Shown piece after piece: positions 29,656-54,510 of a DNA stretch of 64,000 bases (its first letter is position 1; every line of letters begins with the position of its first letter). Origin of the DNA: Podarcis vaucheri (lineage: Eukaryota). The position numbers and the translations under genes were made by a program. A model generated the notes under the pieces. The model was not told the origin of the DNA. It saw only the letters and a list, made by a program, of their open reading frames with translations, and did not search any database. Where the stretch lies: assembly GCA_965113315.1 (NCBI GenBank), contig OZ220368.1; one strand, 5' to 3'.

Positions 29656-32600
29656 TCAGCACCTTCCATTCTGACTCTGCTCTGAATGCACAGATCCATT
29701 CTTCATGAGTCCTTTAGCGACAGGGCTGCTGGGATATAGCCGGGTGAAGCGGGCAAGTGCAAAGATAGGGAAGATGATTCGGTAGGCATTGTAATGCAGA
29801 GTACCAGCTTTGTAGAATGCTGTAGCGATGTCACCCTGAGGGGAGGCAAGAGAGAAATTCCTGAACAACCGACATGCAGTCTTCTGCCCTGCCTTCATGG
29901 TGACTAAATTCCATTTGAGAACCCAGTTGTATGATCACTGCAACCTCTTTCAAGAGCAACTGTCACATACAATATAACCAAGCTTTTATTTGGCAAACAA
30001 GACTCTGGAAGCAGGAATCAGAGACCAGAGCCAATTAAAATGTAGGAAAGGCGACTAAAGACATTGTAGCATCTCAGGCAGAATATCCAAATGGTTCCAT
30101 GATTAAAAAATAAAATAATTAACTGGCAGTCTATGGCTTTTTAAAAGCACCCCTCTGACCTGCCACATCTAACAGTAGGGCCAGCTGTGTGCTGTGCTCT
30201 GATACCACACAAACTCAATCCTGATGGCACATTTTGATGCCACCGCAGTAACAAGACAGGTGCATGAATCACTTGGGTGCTTAAGGCAACAGAATACTTC
30301 CCACAGGAACATCAGAGTGTTCAATAGAGGGAGAATATGGGAAGCACTTGTAAGATCTCACCTGCCAATGCCACACAAGTGCCCATGTGTGTCCACAATA
30401 CATTGCAGCCATGTACGAGAAGCATCTTTATGACAACAACAATGCCAATGAGAGTACATTCTGATGCCTCATTCAGTAAGTGAGGGGTGGAAAACTTTTG
30501 GTCCTCCAAATATTGCTGAATTGCAACTCCCATCATCCATGTCTACTGCCTGTGTAGGCTGGAAGGCAACAACTTAGCCACCCCCACTCTCAGTACTTGG
30601 TGGAAAATGCTCTGCGTTCATTCATTTTACATATATTTGGAGAACATGATCCATTTCATAGCTGGCTAAAAAGGTTCTGTGAACCTTTAAATTATATTGC
30701 TATGAGGATATTTCATTAGGAAAAGAAATTAAAAGTATTAACACACCTGAGGCCACTCCCCAATCGATGTCTGTCTGTCAATCAAAACTTTTATTCCTCT
30801 TTCCAGAACCCGAACATCAGGATATCTGCAATGCCACAAGAATACTGGACATTAGTTTTGTTATCAGCACCCAGTGAGGGCTGGGAGCTGGAGCGAGGGG
30901 AAAGCCTATCAGTTTTCTTCTGGGAAGAAGCCTATATGACTACAATTTCTTTTTAAAAGAAAGAAACCCTCATGGGCTCACAGAAACTCAATGGATTCCC
31001 CTAGGGGAAAGACCTGTAAGTGTATGAGTCCTTCACACAAGTTCCAAAAAGTGAAGCAGCTAAAGAAATGAAATTTCTCCTCCTCTGCCCTTAAGACGGC
31101 CTTAACTGCCTCTTTGTTTGGCATTATTTCAATTGTTTGGACTAAAAAGCACCTGAGAACATCTACATACCAAGCTGCACAAAAATTCAGTCCTCTGTAA
31201 GTTTACAAAGCGTGTTCTCCTTCATGGAGAGCACGTGTTGCGGTGGGGGCTGCCAGGACACTCCAAAGTTGGGGGGCGGGCTAATTGATCGTTGGCCACT
31301 GATGCGATTGGGGCTTCCCTTGTTGTTGGGAAGAAGTTAATGTTGCCATTTATTGATTGACAGCCAGAAATAGTAAAACTCCTTGCACGAGGCTAGGGCT
31401 TCCTCTTTTCGCCCGTGCATCGGATCACCCGTCCCTCCCTTCCTAGAATAGGGTTGTTCACTTTGACCTTGCTATGCCTGTCATGGGGTCGTCTGCTTTG
31501 GAGCGGGGGCCTGGTAGGAATTTTGTCCATCTGGCTGATTGGCTGGGGCCATTTGGCTTTTGCCTACTGCGTAGTAAATCATCACAACTTGTAAGGTTCG
31601 CGGTTAGGCATTGGTTTATGGTTTGGTTGGTTGAGGGGCATGGATTGGCTGTGCCTGCCCCTCTAATGCTGCTGCTGCAAGGGATTCCGTTAAAGGAATT
31701 GGGAGCTAACTATTGCTTGTCCACTCTGTCAAGGGGGCTCGGGCCATAGCAATGAGCACCTGGTTGCATTTGGGGTGAGGGCAGGTTCCCTGCTCTGCGT
31801 AACCCCCAAGTGTATTCCCCCATTCTGACTTTCACGTCATGCGGAATGTCAGTCTGTCCCCCATGGTGGGGGCAGATAGTCATAACCAATGCCTACGCAA
31901 CCATTCACAAATTTGTATTTTAATAAAATTGTGGCCAAAATTATGCCAAAAATCTTAAACAAAAACTTCTGTGTGATGTGTGAGTTATTGGGGTGGACCT
32001 GTGGACCTTGACACACAAAAGCTAGCTATGCAGCATGAGGGACACAACATGCGAGAGGGAAGTCTGTGGCCTGTTTTTCCATAGGTTTTCAAAGGAGTAA
32101 TGGCACCCAACGAAAATAAGCACAACCAAAGATACTTCCAGAAGGAGGCGCCTCTTGTGATGGAGGATTAGGCTGCAAACACACCGTAGGTTTAGAGCAA
32201 ATTACTTCCTACAAGGAATCCTGGGAACTGCAGCTCTGTGAAGGATAAAGTACAGTTCCCAGGATTCTCTAGGGAAAGTCATGTGCTTTAAAGGTACACA
32301 GCTCACTGCTTTTGGGTGCTGGTAGCTCCATCTCCCACGGCTAGCCTGCTTCAGCCAACAGGTCCAGAACAAATTTATGCAAGTGATGCAATGCACTCAT
32401 AGTGAATGGATAATGTGTTTTTGTGAAAAAGACTTTGGAGGAAATGGACTTTGGGCAGATCAGCCCCCTCTTGCCAAACCCCATGAACTTAGAAGCATGT
32501 TTCTTTAGTATGCCTTAATTGGTTTGTCTAACTGCTGCAGAAAGAACTTGGGCAAAAGCAGACAGAAGCCTTTGCTAAGGTAGGTAACTGCCATCTTCTG

Positions 32601-35600
32601 TGCTTACCTAACAGCCATCAGCCCCAACAGAGCCCAGGAGGTTTGGTGGATCTGGGATACAGTGTGCTGAATATATTTGCGAAACCTGTAGGATTCAAAT
32701 TCCTCTCCCCAGCCACCGTCTTCCATTTGCTTGGAGACTAAGAATTCACAGGCTTTGGTCACTTCCTTGCATGCCTCCCTAGAAAATATGAGAGGAGAGA
32801 GAGAGAAAATAGCCCATGAGATGCCTCATTGGGTTTTGTTCCACTGTTGGCCTTGACTGCATCCAAAGAATCTCATGCACAATTACCTGCAGGTAAGGCC
32901 CACTAGGTGCAAGTAGATAAATAGGTACCACTTACCAGCGGGAAGGTAAACGGCGTTCCGTGTGCTGCGCTGGCTCGCCAGATGCAGCTTTGTCACGCTG
33001 GCCACGTGACCCGGAAGTGTCTCCGGACAGCGCTGGCCCCCGGCCTCTTGAGTGAGATGGGCGCACAAACCCCAGAGTCTGTCAAGACTGGCCCGTTCGG
33101 GCAGGGGTACCTTTACCTTTAAGGCCCACTAAGCTTAGCTGGATTTACTTCTGAGTAAGCATGCATAGGGGCTGGTGCTGTCAATATTATATGCACATGA
33201 CTCCCCTGCCTTTGATATTTTGGGTGGAGGAGCCTGACGGTCTCTCCACTTCTCTCTGAAGCTCAGCTCCATCAAGGGCTCCCAGCAGAGCAACATTCAT
33301 ACTAAACTTCTACCCGAAAGGCTGCTTACTCACCCACCACGGTAGATGTATCCCATACATGCAAATGCCTCTAGTCCAAACCAGGTGCCATATGTGAAGC
33401 ATACGCCCCATCGCCTGTCAGGGAGGAAAAACCCATCAGCCGCTGAATGAAAGATACTGAGACAAATGACAGACTACACCCTTTGAGTATGCCCTTCCAT
33501 TCACTGTTTGTTTCATAGAATCATAGAGGTGGAAGGGACCATGAGGGTCATCTAGTCCATGGGTAGGCAAACTAAGGCCCAGGAGTCGGATCCGGCCCAA
33601 TCGCCTTCTAAATCTGGCCCGCTGACAGTCCAGGAATCAGCATGTTTTTACATGAGTAGTATGTCTCCTTTTATTTAAAATGCATCTCTGGGTTATTTGT
33701 GGGGAATAGGAATTCGTTCCCCCCCACAAAAAAAAAATAGTCTGGCCCCCCACAAGTCTAGGGGACTGCTGAAAAAGTTTGCTGACCCCTGATCTAGTCC
33801 AACCCCCTACAATGTGAGAATCTTTTGAATTTCATGTTCCTAGTCAAAGTCAGAATCTCTTATTGCTATATAACTTGTTATTTAATTTTTTCCTGTTGTA
33901 CATTTAACTAGATCTAATTTATATAACCAGTTATTTTACTTAGTGGCTGTATATCTTATGGTGTGAATACTCCTGATGAATCATGTAGGGATCAGTATGG
34001 GATCAGTACATAGTGTTACCAACAGTACAGTATGTTTTCTCTCTAAGCCTAATGACAATGTGAAGGTTTGTGCAACTACCTAATGCAACTACATTGTTAA
34101 AAGACTGCTCAGTTGAACGGTCACAAAATCCTGCCTCAGAACAGACATAGATTTACTGAGGGTGGAAAAAGCTGCTGATGCCTAGATATTGGTACTACAT
34201 TTTAGGCTGCTGGTTTCAAATCACTCCTCAGACAGGCTAACATTAGTTATTTGTTGTGAAGAAGACCCCTAACAGCCCTCTTAGCTGTCACATGCTGAAT
34301 TTGCCTATTTCATGCATCAGGGTTAAATCTGATCCGGCTCTGTTTATTTTTAGGATCTCATTGCATCAAAAAAGAGGCTGCATACTCATCCTTTCATTCC
34401 CGTGCATAGAGTTAGGCTGTAGCATTCCCCTCCACAGCGGGAAGGCAATTCTGTGCATTTATGAGAAATCCCGTTCCTTGCTTGTGTTTTACCCTCCATC
34501 CCAAAATAGTTTCATATTTGTAGATCATACCAAAAGAGCAAGCTGTCGCCAGTGCAAATGCAGATAAACAGGACTGTGCCTGTGATTGGTCACCTCAAGA
34601 CACAGGTCAACCAAACTGACCACACACCCCCAGGCCACCAAATGAAAGTTCTATGCTTGTCTGCCCCCATCTGGACTTCTGGACAGAATCTTCTACCCAA
34701 ACCCCTTTACCAGGGTTCCCTGAGATAAGGCACCAAATGAAGGGGGTGATGCACCATTTTACCCCCCAAGAAATAGACCAAAAATTCATCCCATGCCTTA
34801 TCCACTGAAAGTTGTGACAATTGCTATGAGAAGGCAAAACCACCAATTGGGCCCAATTTGTCTGCATGCAAATTCCTTCCTGGTCCTGAAAACAGTGACC
34901 GATTATCTCCACAGCAAGGTCCTCCATACACATTGCCCACTTACCTCAAAGGCAATGCCAATTTTTAGGTGGGTGGGATGATCAGCTGCCAACTATGTTG
35001 CTGGCTCCCAGTACAGATGGCTTAAATACTACAGCGGAGGACTGGAGTGAACCCTCAGTATCTATCTCTGCTGCTGAAGCCCCACTCCACTATCAGGTCA
35101 CTATTGGCCAATTTAAAATTTATATTTTAAAAATCATCCCCTCTGGTCAGTTGAAGAAAACAATTGGCCATGAAGGACAAAGGACCTGCCCCATCCACGA
35201 CCCCGAGGGGTTGCACTAGGCCACAATCATAGGCCGTATCAATATAGGACAGCTGACTGTCAACTACACTACAAGTGGTCAGCTGATCCACAGCACTTTG
35301 TCTACTAGGATGACACACCAGCTGAAACAATGGAACAGTGTGTTGCATTAGCTAGTTCTCTCCTTTTTATCTGTCAAACTGTTGTGTAGGAAAGGCATTC
35401 AAAAGGTGAAGGTTTCCACAGCTCAGTCAGCAAAGTCATTCTTTGAGAACACTATGTATGCATTCAGAAACTCCGCCGACCAGTGCCACAGTCAAGTTCA
35501 GTGTGGGATATTTGTAAGCCACTCACCCTAACCAGGAGCCATCAGCTTTCTGCATATTACGACAAAACTGCAAAGCCTTACTTAGCGTATCACTGGGAAG

Positions 35601-38600
35601 AAAAACAAAGGAGTCTTCTTACATTTCAAGCTAACCAGGTTCTGGATAAGACAATCATTAAGGCAAGCTCCGTGTAACAATGGCATTCAACGGCCTAAAG
35701 AAGCCTTCCACTTTTTCAGAACTTGGACCCACCCAAAACATTCATTTAGTGGCCCACTTCTTAATGTTTTAACAATGTTAGTGTTGCTATTGTGACCCAC
35801 CTTAGAGCAGGCTGTGATCCAGTAGTGGTCCTACCAGCCTCCCAAGTGATGGCTAATTAAGATCAAGAGTGTTCCTCATCAGTCTTTGTTTAAACCACCA
35901 GCAACAACTTTACATACTGTATCACTTCTATGTTGGAAATAACATGTATGCTGTAAGTTACATGTACATAAACATTTTCGGAGGGGTAGCTGTGCTGGTT
36001 TGCTGCAGCAAAAACAACTAAGTGTCATGTGCCACCTTAAAGCCTAACACATTTTATTGTGGCAAAAGTTTTTATGGACTGGAGTCCACTTCAGATGTAC
36101 CGTGTGATCATTAGTTGCCAGGGATGTAAGCAGATGGAGGTATATGTATATATTTTAAATAATGACTGGAGTTGCAATCAAATACAATAAAAAATAAAAA
36201 ATCAGTCTTTGCAATTCCTGAGCTCTTAACATGGAATATTCTATTAGAATACAGAATTCAAGACTATAGAATATGAATTCATGCTGTAACAATAATATCC
36301 TTCTCAGCTTCTGGGGATTTCCCCCCATACCTTTACCTGATTTCATCTTCCCGGTGATTTGGGAATCTTTTCCCAAAATGTTTCAATCCCTGCATTATGG
36401 ATGAAGTACATTCTGTATAGGTGTGGTCGACCATACAGTCAGCTGAAAATCATAAAGTGAAGTATTTTACTTTATGTTTCAAGGTGGCTTACAGATTTAT
36501 AAAATGCTAGCATCCCCGAAAATATCCTTTAAAAGGGAGCCAAAACCTAGCAGTTTAAACAGCAGGAGGGAAAAAAACCTCTATAAAAACAACAGTCAAA
36601 ATGTCAGCCCTTTGCCCACCAAAAGCTTATCAGGAAAACCGGCCATGCATTTTGTGCAGAGGACTATCAGTGAGATCCTTCTTTGTCTAGATCAGGGGTG
36701 GGCATCCTGCATCCAGAGGGTCACATACAGGCCTCAGCCTATTTTTAGAAGCGCAGGAAGAGCCCAAAGGGAGAGGAAGATGGTGGTGGAGGTGAAACAG
36801 ATGGGGTGATGTGAGAGGAAATCCCTTTGCAAGCAAACAGTTGAGAACCCTGCAAGAATTATTGGTCTCTCCCCTAGCAGCCTGTTGGGCACAGAGCAAA
36901 AGAGAGAGAGGAAGAGAAGAGGGTGTGGCAAAAGGAGGGAGAGATGGCTCTGGCCACACTCCCTGCTGGCATGCAGTTCACAGCAGAATGCCCTCAAGGG
37001 AAAGTGTCCCCTCCCTGAAGGCTGTGAGGTGGTGGGGTCATCCTGGGAGAGGTGGCTTCAGAGTTTTGACAGTCAGACGATGTGTGATGTGAGGAGACCA
37101 TTGATTTCTAGCTGACTTTGTGTACCTGTTTATCATTTTGGTTCCATGGTCAGAGCCACATGGACTGTCCGTATCACACCATCTTTGTTCTGCCTGTTCC
37201 AGAAACCAACCACCAGCCTGCCTTAGAACATCTCCCCTATCAGCACCTACAGTGGACTCTGACAACGTGAACAATTGCCAAGCTCCTATGGCCTAAACAA
37301 ACTGCCTCCAAACATGTGACTTCAGTTCATGGTCTCTATCCCCAAAACTATGAAATTCACAAAAGATTCCCATTTAAGTTGTTCTGATATCAAGGCTGTG
37401 TTCTTACCATACAACTCTGTGCAGTTCATTATCTCCAGTAGCCTACTCCCTCGTCTGGTTTCATAAGAAGCAAAACCACCATCAGAATTTCGCATGCTCA
37501 GAATCTGCAAAAAAGTACAAGTGGGATGGGGGGGGCGGGGAGAGGGTTTAAGAACAGGCATGGTGTTTCTTGTCCTACTTGCAGAGGAACATGGCTGGTC
37601 GCTCCTGTCCAGCCCCACCAGCCACTCCTGTGCCCCTTCCTCACTTGCCTTTTTTATAAACTAAAAAACCCCAAATGTTATGGAGGAGATCCTCCAAATT
37701 CTTCATCATTTTAGTTGCCCCTTTCTATGCAAGAATTCCCATGATTCATGTGGCCATTTTCTGTTTTTCAAGTCTGGATAGATTCCTGCTGTTTCAGACT
37801 TTGCCACAAGCACCAAATGCAATTCAGGCGCCACTCCACCCGGCTACAATGGTGTGTAAAATCAGAGTCTCTGCCCTTGACAAACCAACCTCTTTATTTT
37901 AAGTGGAACTAAACAAAAGGAGAGTGGCTCGCCGTACATATGTAGTCGTGCCAGTTGGCCCTCTCTCACCATATTAGGCCAATGGAGAACTCAGTGGATG
38001 GGGAGATTCTGTTGTTCCAGCAAACCCTAGAAAGTGTCATTGCTCCTCATGACTATGATGAGGATTCCAGGACAAAATTTGCTAATTTGCACTGTATCTC
38101 CAAATTACTACTGTAGGGACAGAGATTAACAGATTATGTATTTGACTTCAAATTGTAAGTAAACTGTAATGATGCAATAGCTACTTTCTAATGAACAAGA
38201 TCAATGGTCCATCTGTTGTCAATCCTAAAGCCCAGTGAGCTTTCGATCCAGCTTACTGAGGGAGATTGCTCTCAGTCCTGCTACCTTACAACCCTTTACC
38301 TGAGCTTAAGGAACTCAAACTTCAAGACTGATCATCCTTCACAGAGGATAAACTGCTGCCACAGGGACACTTCCACCAATTATCTTAGCCCACAAAACCA
38401 ATACGGTCCCACAAAACCAATATTCTCCTCAGCACTATTACTGAATGCTAGATGACCTCAGTCTTCCCACAATAGCTTCCTCCTGCCTGCTTCCCATTTT
38501 CTCTTCTGAGCTTTCCCCCTTCTCACCACATTGACAGCATCAAAGAGGCGCTGAGGTGCCACATGATCTTCTATGAAGGGGCATTTTTCCTCCAGTAGCA

Positions 38601-41600
38601 TCAATGTCCTTATGGCCTCAGCAGTGCAATCACCGACCATCCAGTCATTCTCTCGATTGCTGAAGGGGAATCCACCCTGGATATTGAAGAAAATATATTA
38701 GGACTCCTTGGGCAGCCATCAGTGTAGAATAATCTCCTCCCAAAAAGATCCCAATAAAGCAACCAGGAATTTGACAGGTGATCCACATTTCTCTTTCAGG
38801 ATACTAGACTAGATGGGTCCTGGCCTAAACCAGCAGGCTCCTTAGGTTCTCAGAATTAACACTTAAAGACTCTTTTTTTTTGCTGGCTATGTTTCACACA
38901 GACAGGACACAATTCTGGATGTACCTTGTTCATCTGGCGATAATATCTCTGGTAGTTAGGTGGGTTATCTACAATCTGAAAAACAGATTAGCAGCATATT
39001 AATAAAAGACAATCAGAATATATTTATAACCAGAGAAAGCTAGTGTGGCATAACAGTTTGAGTGATGGTCCTGAGAGACCAGGATGCCAATCTCTACTTC
39101 CTCTCAGCCTAAAATTCCTCATAGGGTTGTTGTGTGGATTCAGTAAGGAGGAAGAAAAGTTCAGTAAGCTGCTTGGAGAAAAAGATGGGCTATGCAATAA
39201 TTAATAAACAATAGAAAATAAATTAACTCAGTCAGAAATATGGTCTGCAATTTAGAAGACAGAATATGGCTACAACCTGATACAATGGCAGCACATAGGG
39301 TTGTGTTCAGTGCCAGCGCTACTCAAAGCAGACTCACTGAAATTTATGAACTCAAATTGGGCATGTTTATTAACCTAAATGGGTTTGCTGTGAATAGGAT
39401 TCATACTGTGTACAACCCATAGTGTCGGTTGAGGTAAATTGCAGTGGATATACAAGGTTTTACACAGGACTGAAGCCACACTATAGAACCGAATTGACAT
39501 TACAGTCAAGGATCACATGGGCTTCAGATTAAAAACCTATTATTCTATAGTCCTGCCATGACACATTATTCAGCTGAATGAATCTCATGCGATCAAGAGG
39601 CAGCTGGACCACACTCTGGCTCTGCTTCCAAGGTTGCACAACATTTCATGACCACAACACCCACACATTAAGCTTTGCCTATGCAGGCATCCATGTCTAA
39701 ATGCACGGATATCAGAGGCAGAGCTGGGGGAAACCATACAACCTTGGAAGCTGCCCTTCAACGTCTGGGTCAAGTAGGCCCATATGCCTTTGATACCCTA
39801 ATAGCTCCTTCTCATGATGAGTAACACATGAAAGATGAGTAACACGTGTTACTTTGCAAAAAGAGACAAGCGTTTCCCTCCTGATTCTTTTGCTGAGACA
39901 GCTGAAAGCTGTATTGATTGATTCCCTGTGTATGTTATTCCAAGGATCAGTGCTTTACCTGAGAGGCTTTCAAGAATTCGTGGGCTTTTTTCAGACAGGA
40001 TGCATAGTCAGGATTGTTCTGAACCCCAGCCTAGAAAAAGACAGAAGTTATGCTTAAGGATTCTGACCCAGGAAAGTCACAGAGAAAATCTTAGACACTT
40101 ACATAAAAGCATCACTTTGGACAGCCACAAAAATAAATGCAAGTTCTTCAGGGATAACTTCAGTGCTACAAAAGGAATACTCAGTGTGTGGATTTCTGGA
40201 CCTCATGTCCTAAGAATCACCTGGAGAACATGCCTTTCTTGGTTAACCATGACAGGCATACGAGGTGTTCGGATCTTGTAATGCATGTGCTTTGGTTAAA
40301 TAATGAACACACACCATCTACATGCCAGTTCATTCATCTAAAATATATATGTAAATGGAAATTATTGTGGAAAGAACAAAAGCAGCAGATTTGACAATAT
40401 AAAATGTTACCTCCAAGAAGCCTTGAATGGCAAATGATGTATCCCAGGTCTGTGATCCCATGACCTGATATAAAGAAAGGAAGAAGAGTTTTGTCCATTA
40501 GATCAGGGGTGGAGAACCATTGGCCTGGGAGCTGAATGCAGTCCTCTCTAACCAGCCCTTTGGATGCTTCCCCAGTCATGTCCACTTCCCGGCCTACACC
40601 CTCCCCTACTGGCCTTGCTCTGCATACTCCTTAAGGGCTGGAATGTCTCATGGAATGGTGATAAGCCCTCCTGCTTAACTGAGTAGAAGATGGGGAAAGA
40701 TGTGGGTGGACTGGTGTGGAAGCCTCTGAAATTTGTGTGGTCACTATTGTGTGGGAGTGGTGAACAATTGGTTTCCTCCCATTTTTATTTTATAATACGC
40801 TATTTTAAAAGAAAGCAAGAGCACCGGGAGTAAATCAGTAATTAAAGGGCTCTTCTGCACCTTCGCTTGGCCCTTGTTTTGATTGTATTGTGTACTGATC
40901 AATTCCTCTTGTTCTCTCAGTTAAGCAGCATGTGTTTTGGGATTCTTGGCACATCAGATAAGATCTGAATCAGCATTTTAAAAAGGTGCTACATGACCTG
41001 GTATTATCTTACATCTTATCTCCTAGCCCTAACCCTGGGGTGAAGCTACACTTTATGCAGGAGAGCCATGACTGGATCTCCTGATATTTTGACATTTTGA
41101 TATTTACTTCAATGAAGCTGGTACTGTCAGGCAAGCAGAAGACAGCTGAGCTTCAGAATCACCAAAGCAATGCAAATTGCAGCCCATAATATTTCCCAAC
41201 ATATTGGTTCACACTATTGTACCTTTATTAACATACCATCTTGTCCCATCCTGCAGAGATATAAAAAGCAGAGATTATAGCAGACACAAGACCATGTAGT
41301 TACCTATCTGCATTGCATAATAGGAGACCCAAATCATCCTGATATCTCTTCCATACAACACCATGAGTGAGGCATGGGTGTGCATGAGATCTGCCTATAC
41401 TGCAAATAAGGATATGTTCACATCACTGGCTTAAAACGCAGCAAGGTCATTTTATCCCACTGCACTGCAAGCCACATTTGCACAGGGTTGTTCAAATCAG
41501 ATAGGGGGCAGAGATATCTTTATAGAGTGTGTATGCCCTTTCTGCCCCTCCCCCTGCAACCCCCTGGAACTCCTAGTGATGAAACTGCCATCTGAGCATC

Positions 41601-44600
41601 TGTGCTCATCTGTGCACATATGACGGATGTCGCAGGTATACACACCATTCTGAAGTACGATGTGAATGTGCTTTACATTTTCTAGTCTGATTGATCCTTT
41701 TTTGAGGAAAGATCAAGGTCTGCAAAACCACACTTATGCAAGACCATGTTCAGGACACTACAAAGATGGGAGGAATAAATATGCCAGCCTTACCAAAGGT
41801 AGTCATAGATCCTGGAGATATGTTCTTGAAAAGCTGGAGAATCGACTCCATCAACATGCCGTCTTATTAGCACATGAAACGCTTTACAAATCTACAGGAC
41901 AAAAGAGAATATCATTCCAGTTAGAAATTCTCCTCCACTATACCTCCATGCTTAGCACACTCATCTGCCACATGGCTATGTCTCTGCATGTCACCAGCCA
42001 AACACAGAAACTCCTTCAAGTGGGCAGAACAAGATTTCCACAAGCATAGCTCTACCTTTGGAAGTATACTGGTTTCTGAGGGAAATCTTCCTCAGGAGAA
42101 TGAGTATATGCTGTCATCAATTTGGTCCCGATACAATTATTTCTGAAAGACATTCACAAAGGACCTACCGGACTAGAATTGGTGGCATTTGAGAATATGT
42201 CATCAGCCTTGATTTGCTCATACATTTCTACGATGGCTTGCTTTCTGAAACTGGTGAAATGGTATCTCTCATACAAATTTAAGGTAGCTGCAGAAGGAAT
42301 AAGAGGGACACTATGAACATCACAATCATGTTAAGGTGGTTCTATCTTCCTCGTGTGTTTTGGGCTGCAATTTTCCATGCAATTACAATTTAGCAAACAC
42401 AATTTAGGACAAACACAATTTAGCTTTCAAAAGTTAAATATTAAAAACAAAACAATCAATTTCTTAACACAGAGGAAAACCCCAAATGCCATGCCTTCCA
42501 TCTGTGGTAACCCACACTTCCACGAACATTTTGCAGATCCCCTTCTCAAAAACTTTTCTACGATCATTTGTCCCAAACTACCCTGTAGTCTGACAGGCAA
42601 AACCACAGTGATGATCACCACGAATGGTTCCAAGACAACAAAACCCATAATGCCACGGCATATGTCCACAGCATGGTTCAGGCCTCTTGCTCACAAAGCA
42701 AGGCTCTTTCTTGTATTTGCTACAAAGGTTTGTATTGTGTTTGTTCTCAGAGCTGACTGTTTGCTTTCAGCTAACAAGCTGTGATAATATGAAACCTGGA
42801 AGGTGCTGTATGTTTCCATGGATATATGTCTGGGCCAAGGACATGCACGTCTTATTCCTCAGACCAACAGAAGTCTCTTCCTCTCTTTCTCTGTGCCAAG
42901 TAAACCCTAGAAAACCTACGCTGAAGACCTGAACTCCTGGAAAAAGACTTGCCAATTCCAAAATCACTCACCAAAAGCAGCATCCAGCATCCAGCTGTGT
43001 GCAGCTTGCAAATCGGCTTCGTAAATATTGTTCCTCTGGGCTGGCCAATCAATGGTGGAGAAGTCCTCCACATAAATCTCCTAGAAGGAAACCATGAAGT
43101 GAAATGACTTTCATAGTAAAGAAGAAGCAGGATATTAGTGTACTTGACAACTGTCATTTCAGAGCTTTAAAAAATCCCAGAAAATTCATGTTAGTGTGGC
43201 AAAATCTGCTCTGTACCCACATAACGCAATGCTTTGTGCTAGGAAGGGAGCCCACCCCTCCCTGTGTTATGGCATCAGCTTTCATGGTCCTCCTCATCAC
43301 CATTTTGATACTTATATGAAAAGAGGTATGTTATAATAAATAATATATTAATGAATTAATGAATTAAATATTAGAGGAGGGTACTCCATAGATTAATGGT
43401 TCAACAGTTCTTCATTAATTTGTTTTTCAGTAGTTCTGAAGAGGGGAGGAGAAAACACCTTTTACCACCCAAAAAGAAAGGGAGAAAGAAAGAAAAAGAT
43501 GCATCAAAAAGGGGGAGTCTGGTATTACGGTTCTGTGATAGAGAAGGCAACATGGGCGTTGTCTGTCAGTTTTTAGGAGAAGAGGCAAAGGTCTGAAGCA
43601 ATTCTCTGTGGAGCACGAAGCACAGAGCCATTAAAATAAATTAAAACAAAAACATGGTAGGAGAGAGACTTACATGATTTGGCAGGGTGATGCCCTGGGT
43701 ACCATCTCCACTCCATATTCCACCCTCCCAAAGTTGCCCTCCCCTATGAAATAGGGATGGCCAAGTGGCATGTTTACATGCCCCCGCCTGTCTCCAACAT
43801 AAATATTCTCATGGCATTTTGAAATAACGATGCTCTGAGCTCGGCTTCTGCCTTAAATGGAAAAAGGACACCCAGCTCAGCCTTCTCCCTGTCAGATACA
43901 AGCAAGCAATCCCCCAAGTGCAGATCCAAGGGAGTACGAGGGTCCCACTTTGACCAAGGATGGTGGGATGTTTGGAGAATGTTGCCTTGCCTGTCTTAGA
44001 CTCTGGATCAATTCATCTTCTTCTATAGTCAGGCGAGTGGCGTAGCAGTAGCTCATCGCGAGGGTGATATGGCGAGCGTGACACCAGTATGTTGAGGGAT
44101 GTCCCGGCAGCCATGTAGGAAACAGCCTATTTCAGAAAGATAGAAAAGCAGGTTATATTGCCCTTCATCCAAGGATCACAGGGCAGTTTGCGGTATAAAA
44201 AGACAAAAATGCATAACATAATAACAAACAAAACAATCCACTATATTTTTGTGCCTTATTTTGCTTTCCAGTATTGTCGTTTTTATCTTCATTTTTATTA
44301 TAGCTAGGGATCTCAAAAACTGGAAGCGGCCCAGGCCTCTTTGGACCTCTGAGAGTGCCTGCGCTCTGAGCTTGGAAATGAAGTTTGGAGGGCACCAGTG
44401 CACATTGCCATGATGTGCACCAAACATCTTTGTAGCTGTGTTTTGTAATCCCAAGCACATCAAAAAGTCAGATGGTTGCACATGGGCAAACTGTTATATA
44501 GGTAGAATCTACACACATATAAAAAATGTTCTGAAAATGCTATAAAAAATACCTTGAATTTTCCATATGGCTCACCATCGCCATCTTGTGTCACATTGTA

Positions 44601-47600
44601 TATTGCACTTAAAACACACTTAAAACGTTTTATTTGCAGCTGTATAGCTGAGTCCATAGTCTCTTATATATACAGATTGAAACCCTGTTATACCCTATTA
44701 CCAAAAAAACAAAAACAAAAACATGATAGACAAGAATTCACTGGTCACAGAGACCAAATGGTCTCAGCATTTCTTTACACACGTAGTTCCTGAAACCTAG
44801 TATCTTCTGCAAGCTTCTGGTTACTTCTTTCTTAAAACCAGTGCTTCTTTTCTGGGGGATGCAGGGGTGCACATACCCCTAAACATTTTGTGAATCTAAG
44901 TTTGGCCTCATTGAGGGGAAGTATTTTAATATGAGTCAGAAAATGAGAGTACCCCTAAACAATTTTTTAGGGGGGAAAGCACTGCTTAAAGCAGTCCTAA
45001 AATCATTAAAATCATTTCCCAGGCCTATGGGCTGCAGTTTGAGCTCCATTTGCGGCTTGCAGTTTTTGCTCCTTAACATGCAGAATATGCCACACCCATG
45101 ACATGTGTCTGCTCACCAATCAGGCAGAGGTATGGCAACCAGCCATACCTCACTCTGACTCATGTGCAGATGTTCTTCATCTGAGTAACCTCTACATGAA
45201 ATCCTGTGAGGAACAGGTTCTGTCACAAACAGACATGAAGTAGTGAAGATTAATATGGATGTCTCCATTTCCAAGTCATTGCTATTTAGTGAAGGATCCG
45301 CCTACTGTGTAATACTGTTGCAGCAGAGACCTTTCTTTGGCAATTCATGATCGGCAGGGTGGGTTGGGAATGAGTAAACTTTAGGACACATACCATAGCT
45401 CAGGAAACAGTGTATTCATTCCCTCCCAGCTGTACAAATTCATAGTAGCCAGCCAAACTTTGCCCAGATGAGGGATTCCAAGAGCACCACCTGGAAAGAG
45501 AATTAACAAGTTTTTCGTTTCCATAGACTGAAGGGGCAAAGTCAAAGAAACCTTCAGTGAAAACCGAGATATGTTTATAGCCTTGTGAGATTGAAAGCTC
45601 AACTTGTTTAGAGTTTAGTGATGCAGTGCCTCAGAATTCCACTAGAGTGCTGTGCCGCAGCCTCCTTTTGATTGGTTGTGGTTACAGGTAGCCAGAGGGA
45701 GGTGGTGACAGCACTTGGCGTAGGCACGAGAAAAAAGCAGCTAAGGAATTGGCGTTCTGGCATTCAGCTGAATAGTTGTATAGCTCCTGAGCTGTGTGTT
45801 AAATCCACTCTGTAATCAGAAAAAAAGTCTCTGAACTTAGTTTGAGAGACAGTGATTAGTGTATTTTAAGAGTATATAGACAAGAGAAAACTGGGAAGCT
45901 GAATTGGGAACAGCACATGTGAGAGGACATATTATTTGGATTCTCAATTCAGTAAGAAGGGGAGAGATCTTCTTGAAAGAGAAGAATCCCAAACCAGTCG
46001 GACGGGTGAGCTGATCCTCTGGTCTGTTATACTAGAGGAGCCTCATAAGTAAGATTTATAGAAGGTTGGGAAACTGACAGAAAGTACCACCCTGAATTAC
46101 ACCCATGAATTCATGGAGATCAGGCCGGTTTTTTACCAGGTGGATATATGAAAGATAATTTACAGAACATTATTGATGTGATTGAATATCTAGAAGTTAG
46201 AACTGATAAGCAAGCAGCTTTGATTTTTATTGATGCAGAGAAAGCTTTTGATAATATATCATGGACATATATGAAAAAAGTAATTGAAATAATGAATTTT
46301 GGACAGGTCTTTGCTAACGGTATTGAGGCAATTTATTCTGAGCAACAGGCTAAATTAATAGTAAACAATACAGTTACTGAAAAATGTAATATAACAAAGG
46401 GAACAAGACAGGGGTGTCCATTGTCACCCCTGTTGTTTATTCTGGTGTTAGAGACTTTGTTGAGAAAGATAAGAACAGATGAAGAAATCAAAGTCATCGC
46501 AATTGGAACTAGGTCATACAAACTTAAGGCATTTGCAGATGATTTAGTAATAACGGTAGAAAATCCTTTGGAATTGGTACCAAAAGCATTAGAGAAATTG
46601 AATGAATTTGGCCAAGTGGCAGGTTTTAAGTTAAATAAAGGAAAATCAAAAATGCTGGTTAAAAATATGACAGAACAAAATAAAAATGAACTTGAACAAA
46701 TAACAGAATTAAAGATAAAAAAGTAAAATATTTAGGGGTCGGTTAACATCAAAAAAATATAAACTTATTTCAAGATAATTATGTAAAAATGTGGAATGAT
46801 ATGTCGAGTAAATGTCAAGTACATGTTGGAAATGTAAAGATAAAGAAGGCACATTTTTCCATATGTGGTGCACCTGCAAATTAGCAAAAGCATATTGGGA
46901 AATTATATATAATGAATTAAAGAAAATGTTTAAAATAACTTTTATTTAAAAACTAGAGTCTTTTCTATTAGGTATAATAGGAGAAGAAATCCCAAAGGAG
47001 AAAAAGGTCTTATTTATGCATGCGACAACAGCAGTGAGAATATTATATGCCCAGGGATGGAAGGAAGAAAGAACCTCATCAAAAGAAGAATGGATAACGA
47101 AATTAATGGACTATGCCGAAGTGGCGAAATTGACTGGGAAGATCAGACACCAAGAGGACAAAATATTTTTTTAAAGATGGACTAATTTTGTAGAATATCT
47201 GAAGGAGCATTGTAAACACATAAAAACTTTAGCAGGCTTGGAATAGCACTGGTGAGATAATTAGGGTAAATTTTGTAATAAGGGAAATGAATAAATTAGA
47301 GAAATATATAAAGATGCAGAAAAGATACCGTATTTTTCGCTCTATAACACGCACCCGACCATAACACGCACGTAGTTTTTAGGGGAGGAAAATCCGTAGG
47401 CATGCCACCCGTAGGCATTTCCTCCATAACACACACAGACATTTCCCCTTACTTTCTAGGAGGAAAAAAGTGAGTGTTATGGTGCAAAAAATACGGTAAG
47501 TGGTAATGATGGGAAACCGGGGAGGAGGATGGGGGCAAGTCTGGGGGTTGAGAACCTCCAAAAGGTAGTGTTTTGTTGTGTTGATATGAATGTAAAANNN

Positions 47601-50600
47601 NNNNNNNNNNNNNNNNNNNNNNNNNNNNNNNNNNNNNNNNNNNNNNNNNNNNNNNNNNNNNNNNNNNNNNNNNNNNNNNNNNNNNNNNNNNNNNNNNNNN
47701 NNNNNNNNNNNNNNNNNNNNNNNNNNNNNNNNNNNNNNNNNNNNNNNNNNNNNNNNNAGAACCAAAGTATTACGTAAGTCCTAAGCTGTAACACCTAGGC
47801 AATTAGCTGAAGAAATTGAAGTGAAAATAAGCTGTGTTTTCCACCTTGTTTAGATGCCTGTAACAACAACTGAATTTAATATATTTATATATGTTAACTG
47901 CCCTGTCATACCCTCATTGCCTGGCTTGGCCACACTCCACACATTGGAGGGCAAATCTAGCAGCAGCTGCACAGCTGTCAGCTACATTCAGTGTAGAGTG
48001 TAGAGTTTCTGAACAGGTTTGAGCCAAAGGGTCCCCTCTTCATTTCTATATTGGACAGAGTGAATGCCCTGATCATCCTGGAACCATATGCATCTGTTTC
48101 TCAGACTGTATCCAGTGTATATTGTATACCACTGTATACAGTGGTACCTCAGGTTATATACGCTTCAGGTTACATACGCTTCAGGTTACACACTCCGCTA
48201 ACCCAGAAATAGTGCTTCAGGTTAAGAACTTTGCTTCAGGATGAGAACAGAAATCGTGCTCCGGCGGCGCAGTGGCAGCAGGAGGCCCCATTGGCTAAAG
48301 TGGTGCTTCAGGTTAAGAACAGTTTCAGGTTAAGTACAGACCTCCCAAATGAATTAAGTACTTAACCAGAGGTACCACTGTACCTCCCACTGTGCCATTA
48401 AACCCTATGTATGAATGCTACTGCAATAAAAAGGCTACAACTCACCTCATTCTTTGTATTTATTAAATAATATTTTATCACTGCATTTGTGCTTTACGGA
48501 GTGGCACAAAGGGCCCGTGTCCAGACCCTCCCAAGAGTTCCCAATATAAATTTTGGAGGAGGAAAAAAACAGGAGGGAAGATATGACCAGCATCTTCTGT
48601 TTGATCATAGAAATGGTGTCAATGTGCCAGTCTATGGAGATGTCTAAAAGGACCAAGGAAGGAAGGAAGGAAGGAAGGAAGGAAGGAAGGAAGGAAGGAA
48701 GGAAAAGAGACAGAATAGAGAGGTGCTCCCAAATAACTGTACAACACCAGGACCCCCAAGTTTTGCCTGGGTACTACGCTCAAGCAAAATGGATTGATTC
48801 AGCCCTGCCAGAGATTTCTGCCTTACCTTTCTTGTGGAGATTTATCCGAGCCCGCACTACATCTGGATGGTCGGGCCCAAGTCCAAGGATTCGCATAGCT
48901 ATGTAGCTAAAGGTTGTGCCAAATACTGTTGACTGTTCTGTAAGATGGCTACCATAAAGAGAGATCAAAGAGCCATTAGAAAGTACACCAGAGTGTTTGC
49001 ATGTCTAAGAAGCTGTTTGAATTGTTTAGTTTCCATTCTTCTGGTGCATTAACTTAAATTCAAAAACTTCTCTGAGAACTTGTCAGAATACAGTGGTACC
49101 TTGGGTTACATACACTTCAGGTTACATACGCTTCAGGTTACAGACTCCGCTATCCCAGAAATAGTGCTTCAGGTTAAGAACTTTGCTTCAGGATAAGAAC
49201 AGAAATTGTGCTCCGGTGGCGTGGCAGCAGTGGGAAGCCCCATTAGCTAAAGTGGTGCTTCAGGTTAAGAACAGTTTCAGGTTAAGAACGGACCTCCAGA
49301 ATGAATTAAGTCCTTAACCCGAGGTACCACTGTACTCCAAGAATACCCAGTTAGCTAGCCATTAGCCGGGATACCACAGAATACCTACTTTTGTTTTCTA
49401 TTTCCTTTTTTTAAAAAAAGTAATGCCTTAATGAAGGACATGTAGTGCTTTGAAATGTTTCTTTTCAGGAGACAGCATGGGCATGAGAGCAACTCATACA
49501 GCCAGAATACCAGTTGAAATTCCATTCCAGATAAATAAAGCTGATCTTGGTCAATGAGAATGTAGATTCTGAATTCAGATCTGAATTCAGATTCAAAGCT
49601 GAGTCAAACCCCGAACCATTTTGTGGTTTGCTATTGGTTTGACAGGATACATTTGGATGGAGGCAACCTGGCCTCACCAGACCATTATCAATTGTAATAC
49701 TTCCTAGAGATGGTGCTTTTTAAAGAAAAGAGTGATGTCGGATATCATTGTGGTGATCACACAGGGTCCCCGGACGTTTCACCATCTCTTGATCCCTGTG
49801 CCACCACTATATTTCCCGCTGCCACCACCCAGGCTCTACCTCGTACAACCCTGAGTCCAGTCAGGGTTAAATTGGAACATAAACTTTTGTTTATTTATTG
49901 CAGTTTAACAAGCGTGTGGTTTAATAAACGGTATCAGTCAATTACAAACATGGGGTGCCTATCCAGACCTATAACTTCCACTACATGCTCTCACTCACTA
50001 AACCACCTCTCAGATATTTACTTGTCTTCCTAGCCCCTAAGTATTCCTGACTCAGCTTATTTCGTTACACTAACTCAACCTACCCACAAACTCTAGCCCA
50101 ATTCACTCCCACTCCAACCAACCACCCAACTCCCAACAAACTTCCTCCTTCGCCCCTCCCAGAGCTGGTTTTATAGTCCCTATGACTCCACCCCCCTGGG
50201 TCCTGATTGGGTAACCTGTTTAACTATTTCACCTCCAGCACTCTCTCATATGTTAATGTCACAATCATGTCTTCATTATTGTTGCCTCTCTCCACCCCTC
50301 ATGCCACAATTCTATTTTTCTCTGCCACAGCTGGGCAGCTTCAGTACATGCTAAGGCCAGCTGGCATTCTAGTCATCTGCCCTGCTGCCCAGTCCACATG
50401 GTGAGTATTGCTCACAGTCAAAAGACAGCAGAATGCAGAAGTGATTTAAAGAAGCCTTCATGGGGGAATTGCATCATGGACCAGCCCAAGACAAAGATAT
50501 GCAGAATTAGAACATCACACCCTCCTTGGACTACTCACAAACTCCAGCCCCCATCTGGAAGCTGTTTTGAGAGGATGTAGCGCAGGAGCTCTCTCTCGGC

Positions 50601-53600
50601 CTCTTCTGGCAGTGAGATCTTGGCAGCATAGCATGACATCAAAAAACCTGTTTGATTTTTCAAAAAAGATAACAATGTATAATACTTGACTATCTCAATT
50701 TTGGTTTGATTTGTTTGGATACCACCTGATTGGATATCAAAATGTAATTTGTGCTTTTGTACCCCTGATAGGTAGTGTGTGGTTTTTTCCTATATTGAAA
50801 CAGAAGAAAAAGGTCAAACATAACAATATTTAATTATCTAGCAAGTTTAGGCAAAAGATCATCACTTCTGCCCCCTTACTAGAAGGTGCATGATTTCATT
50901 CTGGACTATTCAATGTTGGATGCTGCTTACCATTGAACAACAGGCAGCAGGATTCTCAGTGAATTTTCTTCAAACTGCTGGGGTCTTACCCAATCCTATC
51001 AGGTGATGCCAGAGGACAAGCCTAGGACCTTCTGCATGCGGGACTGAACTGAATTCAGCTTCACTCACTTCATTTCAAAGTTTGGTTCACTTTTTCGCAT
51101 CGGTTTGTGATTTTTATTTTTATTTTAGTTCTCATGAAAATTCACCATCCCAATATACACATTTTTGCAAAGCTATTATTGTTGTTTCTGCTGTTGTTGT
51201 TACTCTAGTATATGCCATTCTGCACATTATGTGACTGGAGACCTGCACTACAAAATTCAGTGAATAGCAAATGTCAGTGGATGCCTGTGTTTCAGTTCTC
51301 ATGCTGTTTCTGAAAGGTGAGAGCTCTTTGTTCCTTTCATACTAAAGGCTTACAGGTCCATTATTCTAGATTATTCTGACTTCATTGGAAAGAGTGATAG
51401 CTTTTGCTTTGTTGCAGAAAATCCCAAGTTGGATCCTGGGCATAGACCTGGGGAAATCACAGAGGGTTGCTACCAGTTCAGTGTTGAGATAGATGTGCCA
51501 GTGGGATAAGGCAGCTTCCTATGTTATTATGATGAACAGCTTTGTACAGGCAAAAGAAAGACAAATGATTTAAGCAGTTTCAGAGGTTTCTCAAAATGTC
51601 CACCTATTTGTGCCTAGCCTATCTGGTAAAAAAAGAAATAGATTTATAGAAAATATACAGGGAGGCCCGTTAATGTATTTGTGGTAAGTCTGTTAGCGTT
51701 CCTATACCTGGTCCAAGAGCAACGACACCAGAGCACTCCATGGCCCAATGGCCATCTTCCACTTGCAGGCCAGAGAAGAATTTAATCGCTTTCTGGACTG
51801 CTTCCTGGGCCGTATGGGCTTTGGGCAAGTCTGGAAAGAACTTACTCTGTAAAACAAAATGGGGGAAATAAGAGAAATGTACAGAAATTAAAAAGGCTGG
51901 CTACAGTACAAAGTATGCATAGTGTTAAATGTCCTGCTACATATAATGCAACTGTTGGGTCATTTAAAAATAAATATAGCAGAGAAAGGTGGTCAGGATA
52001 GGGACCATGGCAGATGGGGAAGTGTCATTTAATACTTCCCCTCTTAGCAGTAGTCTCAATGAAATCCCCCCGCCCCTCGCCAGCTGCTATTTGTATGTGC
52101 CTGGAGACACCAGCAGGCGGGGAAAGGCAAAACTCCTTCCTTCCCACCCAACACAATCCCCATCCCGACTGGGTCCTCATGTAGTTGAACAACAGTCATG
52201 TTAAATACAAAAAGTTGTTTAATGTAATTTATGGTTGGCTCCTGAGAGACCATTCCAAAATAAAGTTTTACAACCACACCGCAATTCCGCAAGTGAAATC
52301 AACATCTGCAAACATCTCACAATGCTTCACATCAGTGGGAGATCACAGCTGTTCAGAAATCCAGGAGTCTTTCTCTAAACAAACTGCATAGAGGGTGCAT
52401 GTGCCTCAGTATTTTCACACACACAAAGTCCCTCATGCAAATGCATCATATGTGCATCATGGAAATGATTATCAGTATACTGGAGAATAATCATTGAGAG
52501 CAAGAAAGTGGCTTTCTAGAGAACATCTCTGAGCTCTTAGATCAGAGAACCATAGAATATAAGGGACCAGAAGATCATGTAGCCCAATTCCCTCTCCACA
52601 AGTAAGAACCCTACACTGACTCTGGCTTGCAGATGAACTCACTCAGCTTTCTAGGTATCAAGCACAGAGCAGCTACTTTGTAGAAAGTGATAACTAAGTT
52701 ATGTATTTCCTGTAGATTGTCATATTCATCTTGCAGGCTTGTCTTTTTTCAAGTAGGGTTTCATATTCAACCCTGACATTATCAAGTTGCAGTTGTAGAG
52801 CACCAAGTGGCAGGCGGTTGGGGGAGATGACCCTCATGATCCCTTCCACAGTTCTATGATTGCAATAACCAAGCTTCCTGTGCTCCTAACTGAGGTGTCA
52901 GAAGATGAGAAGCCAAAAGAAAAATGACCCAGCCCTTGGGAAACTGCTGCTAGGCAGGGCCAAGCCAGCAGTCCTCATGCCCTGGGCTCCTTTTGTAGCC
53001 TTTCCGTGTTGTACCATCTGTTATCATTAAGCCACTTACAATGTCCAGCCCTAAAGTGTAAGCCTCGAGTGCATTCTGTTCACGGACACATTCTTCACTG
53101 TCTGCCACGTAGTACCATCTATGCCGCCCTTCCACGGAGCTGAATCGCCAGCGTGTAAGGTCAGTTTTGGGTTCTATTTCATGTGCACCTTTTCTTCTGC
53201 GCAGACATCTACCAAAGAACACCGGGGGGGGGGAGAGTTTGAAACATGCAGGCAGATTTTCAGTTATTCTACCACAGGAAGTTATTCTGAACCCCTTTCT
53301 GTGGTCCTTCCAGCCAGAAGTGAGGGACAGACTTGTCTATTCATTTCAGTGGGTCTATTCATGACTAATTTGTCCACTGGTTTCAGTGAATCTACTCTGA
53401 GTATGGCGTATTCATATACCACCCATAGATCTTTTGCTTTTTCTAACTAGCTCATTATGGAAACACTTCCTATTCTCTACAACCATATTTTTGTCCCAGT
53501 TGTTCAGAGCAGAAAGCGGTTGACAGGGATGGCTTATGAGTTTCTTTTATATCCTGCTTCATTCCAATGACAGAGCTCATTTTAGGGTTCTTAAGTATGG

Positions 53601-54510
53601 AAGTCCAAGACTGATCAACAGGACTTATTCTCAGATAATTTGGCATAGGACCACAGCTTTAATTCCCAATCTGTCCAAATATGTTCATTTCCCCAAGTCT
53701 GCTCCTAAAACTGCCCCCCCCCATCTTCTCTTAGTTATTTTACAATATCTCTTCTAACTTGGAAATGATGAATTTTCACGTGTCTGTCTTTCACATTATC
53801 TCTTTGGTGGAATCTCTTGCATACCTTTCCTGGAGAAAAGCCCCAGTGAAACAGTGGTACTTACTTCTGAGTAAGCATGCATAGGATTGTCCTAGTAGAC
53901 TATTCCATGTTTAAAATTTGGGGGTGATTTTCTCGTAATTGGCCTATTATAGGCCTCCACTAATTGAACTGTTTTAGACATCAATAATTGACAAATAATA
54001 AGGACCACTGATTCAGTTCCAAAGAGAGTTAATATGTATGTACTGTGCTGCACTCTGCTTTAGTAATTAATTTATATGCAGCCAGATATTTTGCCCATCT
54101 TCTAGTTATTCCCATCATTTATCAAATTGGGTTTGCTAAGTTTAACATCATCAACACATCTAGTTTCATGTCATTTCTCAACTGCAAATCTTTTTCTTCA
54201 AAGTTATTATAACCAATGAAACTTCTTTACACCAATTTTCATTTCTGTTCCTAATCACAATACAAAACTTCTGTTCTATTTTCCACAGTATTTCTGAATG
54301 AAGAAAAGCCAAAATGCTGCCTTTTTATTCCTTAATACATCAGGTTAATTGCCCTTCCCATCTTATTTCTGTGAACTTCTCCTGTAATAAAGCTTGCTTA
54401 ATCAATATGAATTAAGTCAAGCAACTGGCACACTTTGTTATTTTATTTAACCATCATCCTAATTCAAAGCATATAGATTGCACACAATGTACTTACGTCC
54501 CATCAGACAT
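29656..54510 (-). CDS. Divergent 2,3-oxidosqualene cyclase / lanosterol synthase-like protein (copy A), 22 exons, 748 aa, open frame
   Basis: Exons in transcription order: 54497-54510, 53040-53208, 51708-51846, 50539-50647, 48827-48948, 45394-45490, 43991-44126, 42972-43080, 42169-42287, 41794-41891, 41223-41250, 40411-40464, 39959-40030, 38925-38975, 38527-38676, 37408-37504, 36337-36442, 35527-35592, 33334-33414, 32608-32778, 30747-30825, 29656-29835. Total 2247 nt, all phases compatible, no internal stop. Contains DCTAE ([10 protein letters not shown]), [23 protein letters not shown] and QW repeats (QVEDGHW, QLPDGGW, QKADGSW, QMEDGGW). Symbol withheld because it looks like an LSS paralogue, not the orthologue. 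Confidence 0.93.
31236..32020 (+). mobile_element. Probable solo LTR
   Basis: Begins TGTTG, GC-richer than its flanks, AATAAA at 31922; 3' terminus decayed and TSD not clear. Confidence 0.5.
32906..33120 (+). mobile_element. Sauria SINE, 5'-truncated, with 11-bp TSD
   Basis: Ends ggggtacctttaccttt; flanked by AAGGCCCACTA at 32895-32905 and 33121-33131. Confidence 0.85.
33560..33790. mobile_element. hAT-like non-autonomous element nested in a CR1 3' end
   Basis: gggtaggcaaact...agtttgctgacccctg termini with TCTAGTCC repeated on both sides. Confidence 0.65.
44839..44984. mobile_element. hAT-type MITE (same family as 9862-10007)
   Basis: CAGTGCT...AGCACTG termini; TSD CTTAAAAC/CTTAAAGC. Confidence 0.82.
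46115..47325 (+). mobile_element. L1/Tx1-clade LINE fragment (RT domain plus C-terminus, internally deleted)
   Basis: ORF 46148-46726 with [21 protein letters not shown] and AFADD RT motifs, followed by the CWKC..HMWCTC zinc-knuckle region. Confidence 0.9.
47328..47496. mobile_element. Tc2/pogo-like MITE
   Basis: TA-CCGTATTTTT...AAAAATACGG-TA. Confidence 0.8.
47598..47757. other. Assembly gap (160 N) in intron 5 of OSC-like copy A
   Basis: Run of N. Confidence 1.
48139..48380. mobile_element. Tc1/mariner (Tigger-like) MITE
   Basis: TIRs CAGTGGTACCT / AGGTACCACTG, TA target duplication, internal cttcaggtta repeats. Confidence 0.85.
48656..48704. repeat. (GGAA)n microsatellite
   Basis: Direct observation; unexpanded at the homologous copy B site (about 59135). 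Confidence 0.95.
49091..49332. mobile_element. Tc1/mariner (Tigger-like) MITE, second copy
   Basis: Near-identical to 48139-48380 and in the same orientation; TA TSD. Confidence 0.85.
49749..50263 (-). mobile_element. Solo LTR with 5-bp TSD
   Basis: TGTG...CACA termini with ATCAT on both sides; the empty site with a single ATCAT is present in copy B (about 60000); AATAAA on the minus strand. Confidence 0.8.

Follow-up and report, generated by a model that had tools for sequence, protein, structure and literature searches.

Does a lanosterol synthase-like gene in which one exon is a codon too short still encode a lanosterol synthase? The question is raised by a 64,000-nucleotide stretch of DNA from the lizard Podarcis vaucheri (contig OZ220368.1 of assembly GCA_965113315.1; the whole of this stretch is called the window below), which carries such a gene on its minus strand. 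An earlier note on this DNA had described an exon 12 of 54 nt in place of 57 nt, and had taken the missing codon to be that of the specificity residue Thr381 (residues are given in human numbering throughout). We found that the window gene is an intact oxidosqualene cyclase (OSC) paralogue, lanosterol synthase-like (LSSL). Our best explanation, which we consider likely as a whole, is that LSSL constitutes a squamate-specific family of LSS paralogues with an old shortening of an active-site loop and an altered product. The structural and evolutionary part of this explanation is highly probable; a change of product, as judged from the sequences, has an even chance.

The exon map of the gene was guided by database proteins, exon by exon. 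The frames of its exons are all open and their phases consistent, with 20 GT-AG introns and one GC-AG intron. On the minus strand, exon 12 and its borders read ...cctttctttatatcag/GTC ATG GGA TCA CAG ACC TGG GAT ACA TCA TTT GCC ATT CAA GGC TTC TTG GAG/gtaaca (slashes mark exon borders here and below), which gives 18 codons compared to the 19 of canonical LSS and agrees with the length described earlier. The preceding exon 11 encodes the second strand of the β-hairpin that leads into the loop, and a Trp codon is split TG/G between exons 10 and 11. We observed no AG at positions −5/−4 of the exon 12 acceptor, where the bases are AT, and no GT 3 nt to either side of the exon 11 donor; the acceptor sequence thus bears out the statement that there is no alternative AG three bases upstream. 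The three bases preceding exon 12 are CAG, which is not a Gly codon. As neither an AG nor a GT lies 3 nt from the junctions, no nearby splice choice adds a codon in the window DNA. DNA contigs of a related organism showed exon 12 and its acceptor unchanged and free of indels, the sole nearby difference being a T>A at 40407 (intron 12 position +4). The exon 11–12 junction, as placed here, is deduced from the DNA and from gene models of other species that agree with it, and the event behind the loss of the codon may have been a 3-nt deletion or a shift of the acceptor.

These junctions bear on the suspicion that the 54-nt exon is an artefact of gene modelling, and that the real mRNA has 19 codons through another splice site. 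Two database models, XP_033007924 and XP_029141446, do carry an extra Gly that is absent from their closest relatives, and there is no RNA coverage of the exon 12 junction in the species. However, the bases around the junctions offer no Gly to nearby splicing, and the short form recurs in 31 proteins, drawn from more than a dozen species. We consider an artefact very improbable.

The length of the loop was compared among 198 cyclases. It is long in 167 of them, namely 165 other cyclases and the two LSSL models with the extra Gly, and short in 31, all of which are squamate LSSL proteins, with lacertids, Rhineura, snakes, Pogona and Sceloporus represented. The human-type sequence given in the earlier note was confirmed with a 732-aa primate LSS, which reads DGMKMQ-GTNGSQIWDT; residues 382–398 of the human LSS chain 1W6K (NGSQIWDTAFAIQALLE) align to exon 12 from its Met on. 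We infer that the canonical exon is G380 to E398, 19 codons, because foreign sequence adjoins GTNGSQ and the end of ..LE exactly in many mis-spliced database isoforms from birds, turtles, mammals and a snake. Canonical squamate LSS is free of the deletion, whose presence there the earlier note had named as a ground for refutation: GTNGSQ[LIV]WDT is found in the proteins of Zootoca, two Anolis, Elgaria, Gekko, Eublepharis, Phrynocephalus and Protobothrops.

The claim that the missing residue is Thr381 itself hinges on how the sequences are aligned and probably does not hold. Both MAFFT and hhalign (LSSL profile versus canonical OSC profile) place the gap at G380, and Lacerta agilis XP_033007924 and Protobothrops XP_029141446, which read K-G-V-M-G-S-Q, align without a gap against Q-G-T-N-G-S-Q. 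Therefore, Thr381 is replaced and not removed, with T381V followed by N382M, and what the backbone lacks is the Gly before it.

The other LSSL proteins were found by searching representative proteins with a single window exon, which returned a Crotalus LSSL fragment, and by follow-up searches and cluster look-ups in RefSeq and UniProt. They come from lacertids (Podarcis, with four species or copies; Lacerta agilis, with three genes; Zootoca), the amphisbaenian Rhineura, snakes (Candoia, Protobothrops, Crotalus, Pseudonaja, Notechis, Pantherophis, Pituophis, Erythrolamprus, Thamnophis, Naja and Ophiophagus) and iguanians (Pogona, Sceloporus and Phrynosoma). Examples are P. raffonei XP_053248303, P. 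muralis XP_028587945, P. lilfordi CAI5777094, Rhineura XP_061489107, Candoia XP_063155921 and Crotalus tigris XP_039175936. Overall, the window exons are ∼91% identical to Podarcis LSSL and ∼57–60% identical to canonical LSS; many of them are 95–100% identical to the P. raffonei XP_053248303 and P. muralis XP_028587945 copy, which reads W-M-G-Q. Canonical LSS is kept beside LSSL in the same species in Zootoca, Protobothrops and Pseudonaja. No LSSL protein of at least 257 aa from geckos, skinks, anguimorphs or Anolis was present in the protein list that holds their canonical LSS, which is an absence from that list and not a proof of absence. We found no paper on a squamate LSS paralogue family. 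The genes are already in RefSeq as automatic annotations under an uninformative name, and share the 18-codon exon 12 and the substitutions of the window gene; what is new here is the clade-wide pattern and not the gene.

Apart from the exceptions described below, every full LSSL model has the junctions ...K/VMGSQTWD...LE/AG. Exon 12 mostly begins with VMGSQTWD[TA]; FIGSQ stands there in one Zootoca copy, AIGTQTWN in Sceloporus and VLVPQTWN in Pogona. The window gene conforms to the family pattern [VA][MIL][GV][STP]QTW. The exceptions to the 18-residue exon are the two models in which a Gly codon brings the number to 19, and three elapid models that skip exon 12. Models with the skip, from elapids and related snakes (including Naja and Ophiophagus), read ..MK/AG[VI].NDPEY, and those of Notechis and Pseudonaja keep the exon; in the skipping snakes it may have been missed by the gene models or lost. 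Both 19-residue forms adjoin 18-residue sisters in the tree (P. lilfordi and Crotalus tigris), so that the 18-residue exon is, by parsimony, the ancestral state for LSSL. The extra Gly may then be secondary, through a recurrent 3-nt indel or a different acceptor, or it may be a model artefact. Taken together, the comparisons indicate that the short loop is a trait of a squamate-wide paralogue family and is not private to the window gene.

We then considered the age of the family. Database LSSL proteins served as stand-ins for the tree and for the fold models, and the window gene itself was compared exon by exon. LSSL is monophyletic (100 in the Shimodaira–Hasegawa-like approximate likelihood-ratio test), with a stem branch 0.53 changes per column long, and the order inside the clade matches squamate phylogeny. 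A free quick tree placed LSSL among sauropsid LSS beside a turtle duplicate, with weak support. A tree that joins LSSL and squamate LSS as one clade was slightly better than the free tree and was not rejected (P = 0.62 in the approximately unbiased test), and an origin within squamates fits these data. As lacertids, the amphisbaenian, snakes and iguanians share the shortening, it most likely arose on the long LSSL stem branch. LSSL pairs are 66–87% identical, compared to 82–85% for the matching canonical LSS pairs; LSSL therefore evolves faster than canonical LSS, yet is constrained. The residues V381-M382-G383 are unchanged between lacertids, Rhineura and snakes.

The same constraint bears on whether the window copy might be a decaying duplicate in a tandem array of birth and death, with the deletion as one lesion among many. 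A truncated copy does lie upstream of the gene (copy B, Table 1), lacertids have several copies, some of whose models are partial or flagged as low quality, and there are almost no RNA reads. However, 22 of the 22 exons of the window gene are open, and it has a start codon, a stop codon and splice sites that can be used. Lacertids, Rhineura, snakes and iguanians have kept the deletion and the residues next to it, and no catalytic residue is damaged. Decay of the window copy is hardly credible.

The residues kept in nearly all LSSL proteins are W230, H232, W387, F444, V453, D455, C456, Y503, C533, W581, Y587, F696 and Y704. Those changed throughout the clade are Y98C, C233A (or T), Y237T/L/S/M, ΔG380, T381V, N382M, C449N, G450D, F521Y and I524C. 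From sharks to mammals, canonical LSS does not vary at the changed positions; the exceptions are predicted turtle LSS-like duplicates. The window exons themselves show Y98C, C233A, Y237T, N449, D450, V453, D455, C456, Y503 and C533, and the catalytic Asp motif of OSC, x-D-C-T-A-E, is present in them together with Cys456 and Cys533. The strict LSS loop G380-T381-N382-G383 and the residues Y98, C233, Y237, F521 and I524 are all changed or deleted in LSSL. Two iguanian LSSL proteins have further changes (H232Y, F444A and C449H in Sceloporus; G383V, V453I and C456G in Pogona). Turtle LSS-like duplicates also show changes in the pocket, with a loop of full length: W230Y, C233S, Y237H and I524T in Emydura, and G380S, N382S and F444L in Mauremys.

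Residues 381, 449 and 453, which the earlier note had treated as the triad separating lanosterol from cycloartenol and parkeol synthases, are V381, N449 and V453 in the window gene, in agreement with that reading. The triad is described in the literature as a product signature, with T381, C or Q449 and V453 for lanosterol and Y, H and I for cycloartenol, while in bacteria only position 453 tracked the product (PMC4919349). V453 is the only part of the strict lanosterol signature that LSSL retains, V381 and N449 occupying the other two positions. In plant lanosterol synthases the residues corresponding to human 449 and 453 are Asn477 and Val481, and H477N alone makes a lanosterol synthase of cycloartenol synthase (10.64898/2026.05.26.727834). 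The N449/V453 pair of LSSL is this plant pattern, and the triad alone is accordingly no argument against lanosterol. In Arabidopsis cycloartenol synthase (AtCAS), Tyr410 (human 381), Tyr118 and Tyr734 form a hydrogen-bonded cluster at ring B, and Y118L alone allows the formation of cucurbitadienol (10.64898/2026.05.26.727834). The correspondence of AtCAS 118 to human 98, and of 734 to human 704, was inferred from numbering offsets, the preprint giving human equivalents for 257 and 532 only.

Fold predictions were consistent with an OSC. The AlphaFold model of P. lilfordi LSSL (predicted local distance difference test, pLDDT, 87; predicted template modelling score 0.89) shows the two-domain α/α-barrel fold of OSCs and squalene-hopene cyclases (SHCs), with a template modelling score (TM-score) of 0.94–0.97 against human OSC 1W6J/1W6K. 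Precomputed Pfam matches for database LSSL proteins include both squalene-hopene cyclase domains, PF13249 (N-terminal) and PF13243 (C-terminal). In the LSSL model, strands 370–373 and 376–379 are followed by a coil at 380–384 and a helix from 385; in a primate LSS model obtained by the same method, the strands are at 369–372 and 375–378, the coil at 379–383 and the helix from 384. The coil thus has five residues in both models and the helix with Trp387 begins one residue later in LSSL, a hint that the missing residue appears to be absorbed by the first residue of that helix.

The shorter spacing also raises the question of whether LSSL has turned to squalene, or to an all-chair cyclisation of the hopene type. 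The earlier statement that SHC has the same short spacing to the Trp proved correct as a resemblance in length: in hhalign comparisons, SHC has a one-residue gap inside the loop against OSC, and none there against LSSL. The loss of Tyr98, a residue that promotes the boat conformation of ring B, and the smaller channel residues would also suit a switch of this kind. The acid motif of LSSL, however, is the OSC-type V/G-D-C-T-A-E and not DxDD. SHC-type sequences with DxDD have the loop Q-P-C-x-S-P-[VI]-W-D-T and the acid motif D[VILCTA]DD[TS], and the window gene has DCTAE in place of the protonating DxDD. With this motif, nothing points to squalene as the substrate. The 57% identity and the high TM-score to human OSC likewise stand against 22% identity to SHC, for which the TM-score of the model is 0.72 (normalised to the model) or 0.85 (normalised to the SHC chain). 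We give a switch to squalene very little credence.

How, then, might the product have changed? Trp387 is the cation-stabilising residue, Asp455 the protonating acid, and His232 and Tyr503 the base pair, with the hydroxyls of Tyr98 and Thr381 flanking ring B and C8/C9. In the mechanism that we propose, LSSL would still bind and protonate 2,3-oxidosqualene and run the polycyclisation. With the Tyr98 and Thr381 hydroxyls lost and the 380–384 loop repositioned, the late cation would be steered and quenched differently, with a product that probably differs from lanosterol or accompanies it. A more specific form of this proposal is that LSSL is a dedicated second triterpene cyclase of squamates, which turns oxidosqualene into a non-lanosterol skeleton, steered by the G380 deletion, T381V and Y98C, and possibly destined for skin or gland lipids. 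We advance this tentatively, at slightly less than an even chance. Such a skeleton could be a double-bond isomer or a more rearranged triterpene of the protosteryl type.

Several observations weigh against an altered product or against the short loop as a fixed trait. N449 and V453, with H232 and Y503 kept, are compatible with the formation of lanosterol, as in plants. The pLDDT of the loop is moderate (79 in LSSL and 76 in canonical LSS), and one-residue differences in DSSP assignments are within the noise of the models. Loop length may vary within LSSL, or some of the gene models may be wrong. Across 38450–44200 (5.7 kb of the gene), three bulk RNA libraries labelled with the species name yielded 0, 2 and 1 reads, none of them spliced, numbers that establish neither the junction nor a silent gene.

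The most serious competitor is that LSSL is still a lanosterol synthase, as a tissue-specific or back-up copy, and that the shorter loop is neutral or compensated. This would agree with the retention of Asp455/Cys456/Cys533, His232/Tyr503, V453, W387, F444, W581 and F696, with the natural occurrence of N449 and V453 in plant lanosterol synthases and the conversion of cycloartenol synthase by H477N, and with the unchanged fold of the P. lilfordi model. It agrees poorly with clade-wide changes at nine sites that are invariant from sharks to mammals, including the ring-B contact Tyr98 and three channel residues, and with the long stem branch. Canonical LSS is, moreover, retained in the same species, and a change at the presumed equivalent of Tyr98 alters the product of a plant cyclase. 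On balance, we consider an unchanged lanosterol synthase unlikely. LSSL is a strong candidate for a vertebrate cyclase that forms a novel triterpene, because its catalytic machinery is kept, its loop is shortened, and its substitutions fall at sites tied to product choice in plants and echinoderms.

To our knowledge, vertebrates are taken to have a single OSC with a nearly invariant active site. Between sharks and primates, canonical LSS showed no difference in the G-T-N-G-S-Q loop or in about ten pocket residues. If LSSL does have a new product, it would be the first specialised triterpene synthase known in a vertebrate, possibly for skin or gland lipids. The loop change also provides a simple handle on whether loop length determines the product in OSCs; we know of no substitution studies that address this determinant.

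Table 1. Coordinates of the LSS-like gene and of other features in the window (slashes mark exon borders)
Feature	Position	Strand	Details
LSS-like coding region, 22 exons	29659..54510	minus	ATG exon 54510-54497; TGA stop after 29659
First coding exon	54497-54510	minus	ATGTCTGATGGGAC/gtaagt; MSDG + split Thr codon; joins ..ggtag/A TGT CTG near 53208
Sole GC donor of the gene	43985-43995	minus	Intron after exon ending at 43991; ..AGACAG/gcaagg
Exon 10	41794..41891	minus	98 nt; end ...RIYDYL + TG; donor CTT TG/gtaagg
Exon 11	41223..41250	minus	28 nt: G (last base of split Trp codon) + MGQDGMLIK; donor AAG/gtacaa
Intron 11 acceptor	40465..40486	minus	AG at 40466-40465; pyrimidine-rich tract cttcttcctttctttatatc before the AG holds no second AG
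Exon 12	40464-40411	minus	54 nt, 18 codons; carries V381, M382, G383 and W387; no G380 codon
Intron 12 GT donor	40409..40410	minus	GAG/gtaaca
Exon 13	39959..40030	minus	72 nt, 24 residues; continues W387 helix region
Exon 15	38527..38676	minus	Triad positions 449 and 453 and catalytic acid; reads ..WMVGDCTAE
Exon 15 residues	N449 38649-38647; V453 38637-38635; D455 38631-38629, then C456	minus	
Exon with Cys533 region	36443-36336	minus	Reads ..YTECTSS
Truncated tandem copy B	~62720-59257	minus	Exons 2-5 only; upstream of main gene
Run of 160 N	47598-47757		Inside an intron of the gene
Open frame, 176 aa	27081-27608	plus	Sub-threshold tetratricopeptide-repeat (TPR) matches only

Some features of the gene and its surroundings deserve mention. 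Without the tiny first coding exon, the exon that follows seems to have no start codon. Contigs of the related organism differ from the window in exon 15 at 38611, 38634 and 38638, where they read ..NDWIVSDCTAEAM and so match the other Podarcis LSS-like copy at these residues; the species may have diverged here, the contig may come from a paralogue, or gene conversion may have taken place. Copy B is ∼46–56% identical to a fish LSS fragment and 53–70% identical to LSS-like proteins, and no later exons were found between it and the start of the main gene. When ten long open frames outside the gene were scanned with Pfam, nine had no match.

Among known cyclases, canonical vertebrate LSS (EC 5.4.99.7) shares with LSSL the fold, ∼57–60% identity, the exon structure and phases, and the catalytic residues including Y704; the loop before W387 is one residue longer in the canonical enzyme. 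Bacterial SHC (e.g. 2SQC) shares with LSSL the short Q-x6-W spacing, as a resemblance only, and differs in its DxDD motif, its squalene substrate and its low identity (22%), LSSL having DCTAE. Among plant enzymes, the lanosterol synthases offer the Asn477/Val481 counterpart of N449 and V453, and the cucurbitadienol synthases are set apart by the loss of Tyr at AtCAS 118, LSSL being likewise without Tyr98, which is taken as the equivalent residue. Plant cyclases have Tyr at 381 in a full-length loop, GYNGSQ, and none of those compared has a shorter loop.

An animal precedent is found in sea cucumbers, where changes at position 444 have made tandem LSS duplicates into synthases of parkeol and lanostadienol (PMC9236903). 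Like LSSL, these are animal LSS duplicates that keep H232 and Y503. In the sea cucumbers, however, a single substitution of F444 (to L or Q) is involved and the canonical LSS has been lost (PMC9236903), whereas in LSSL F444 is mostly kept and the canonical LSS persists. The changes in LSSL consist of a loop deletion together with many other sites, unlike the single switch of the sea cucumber enzymes.

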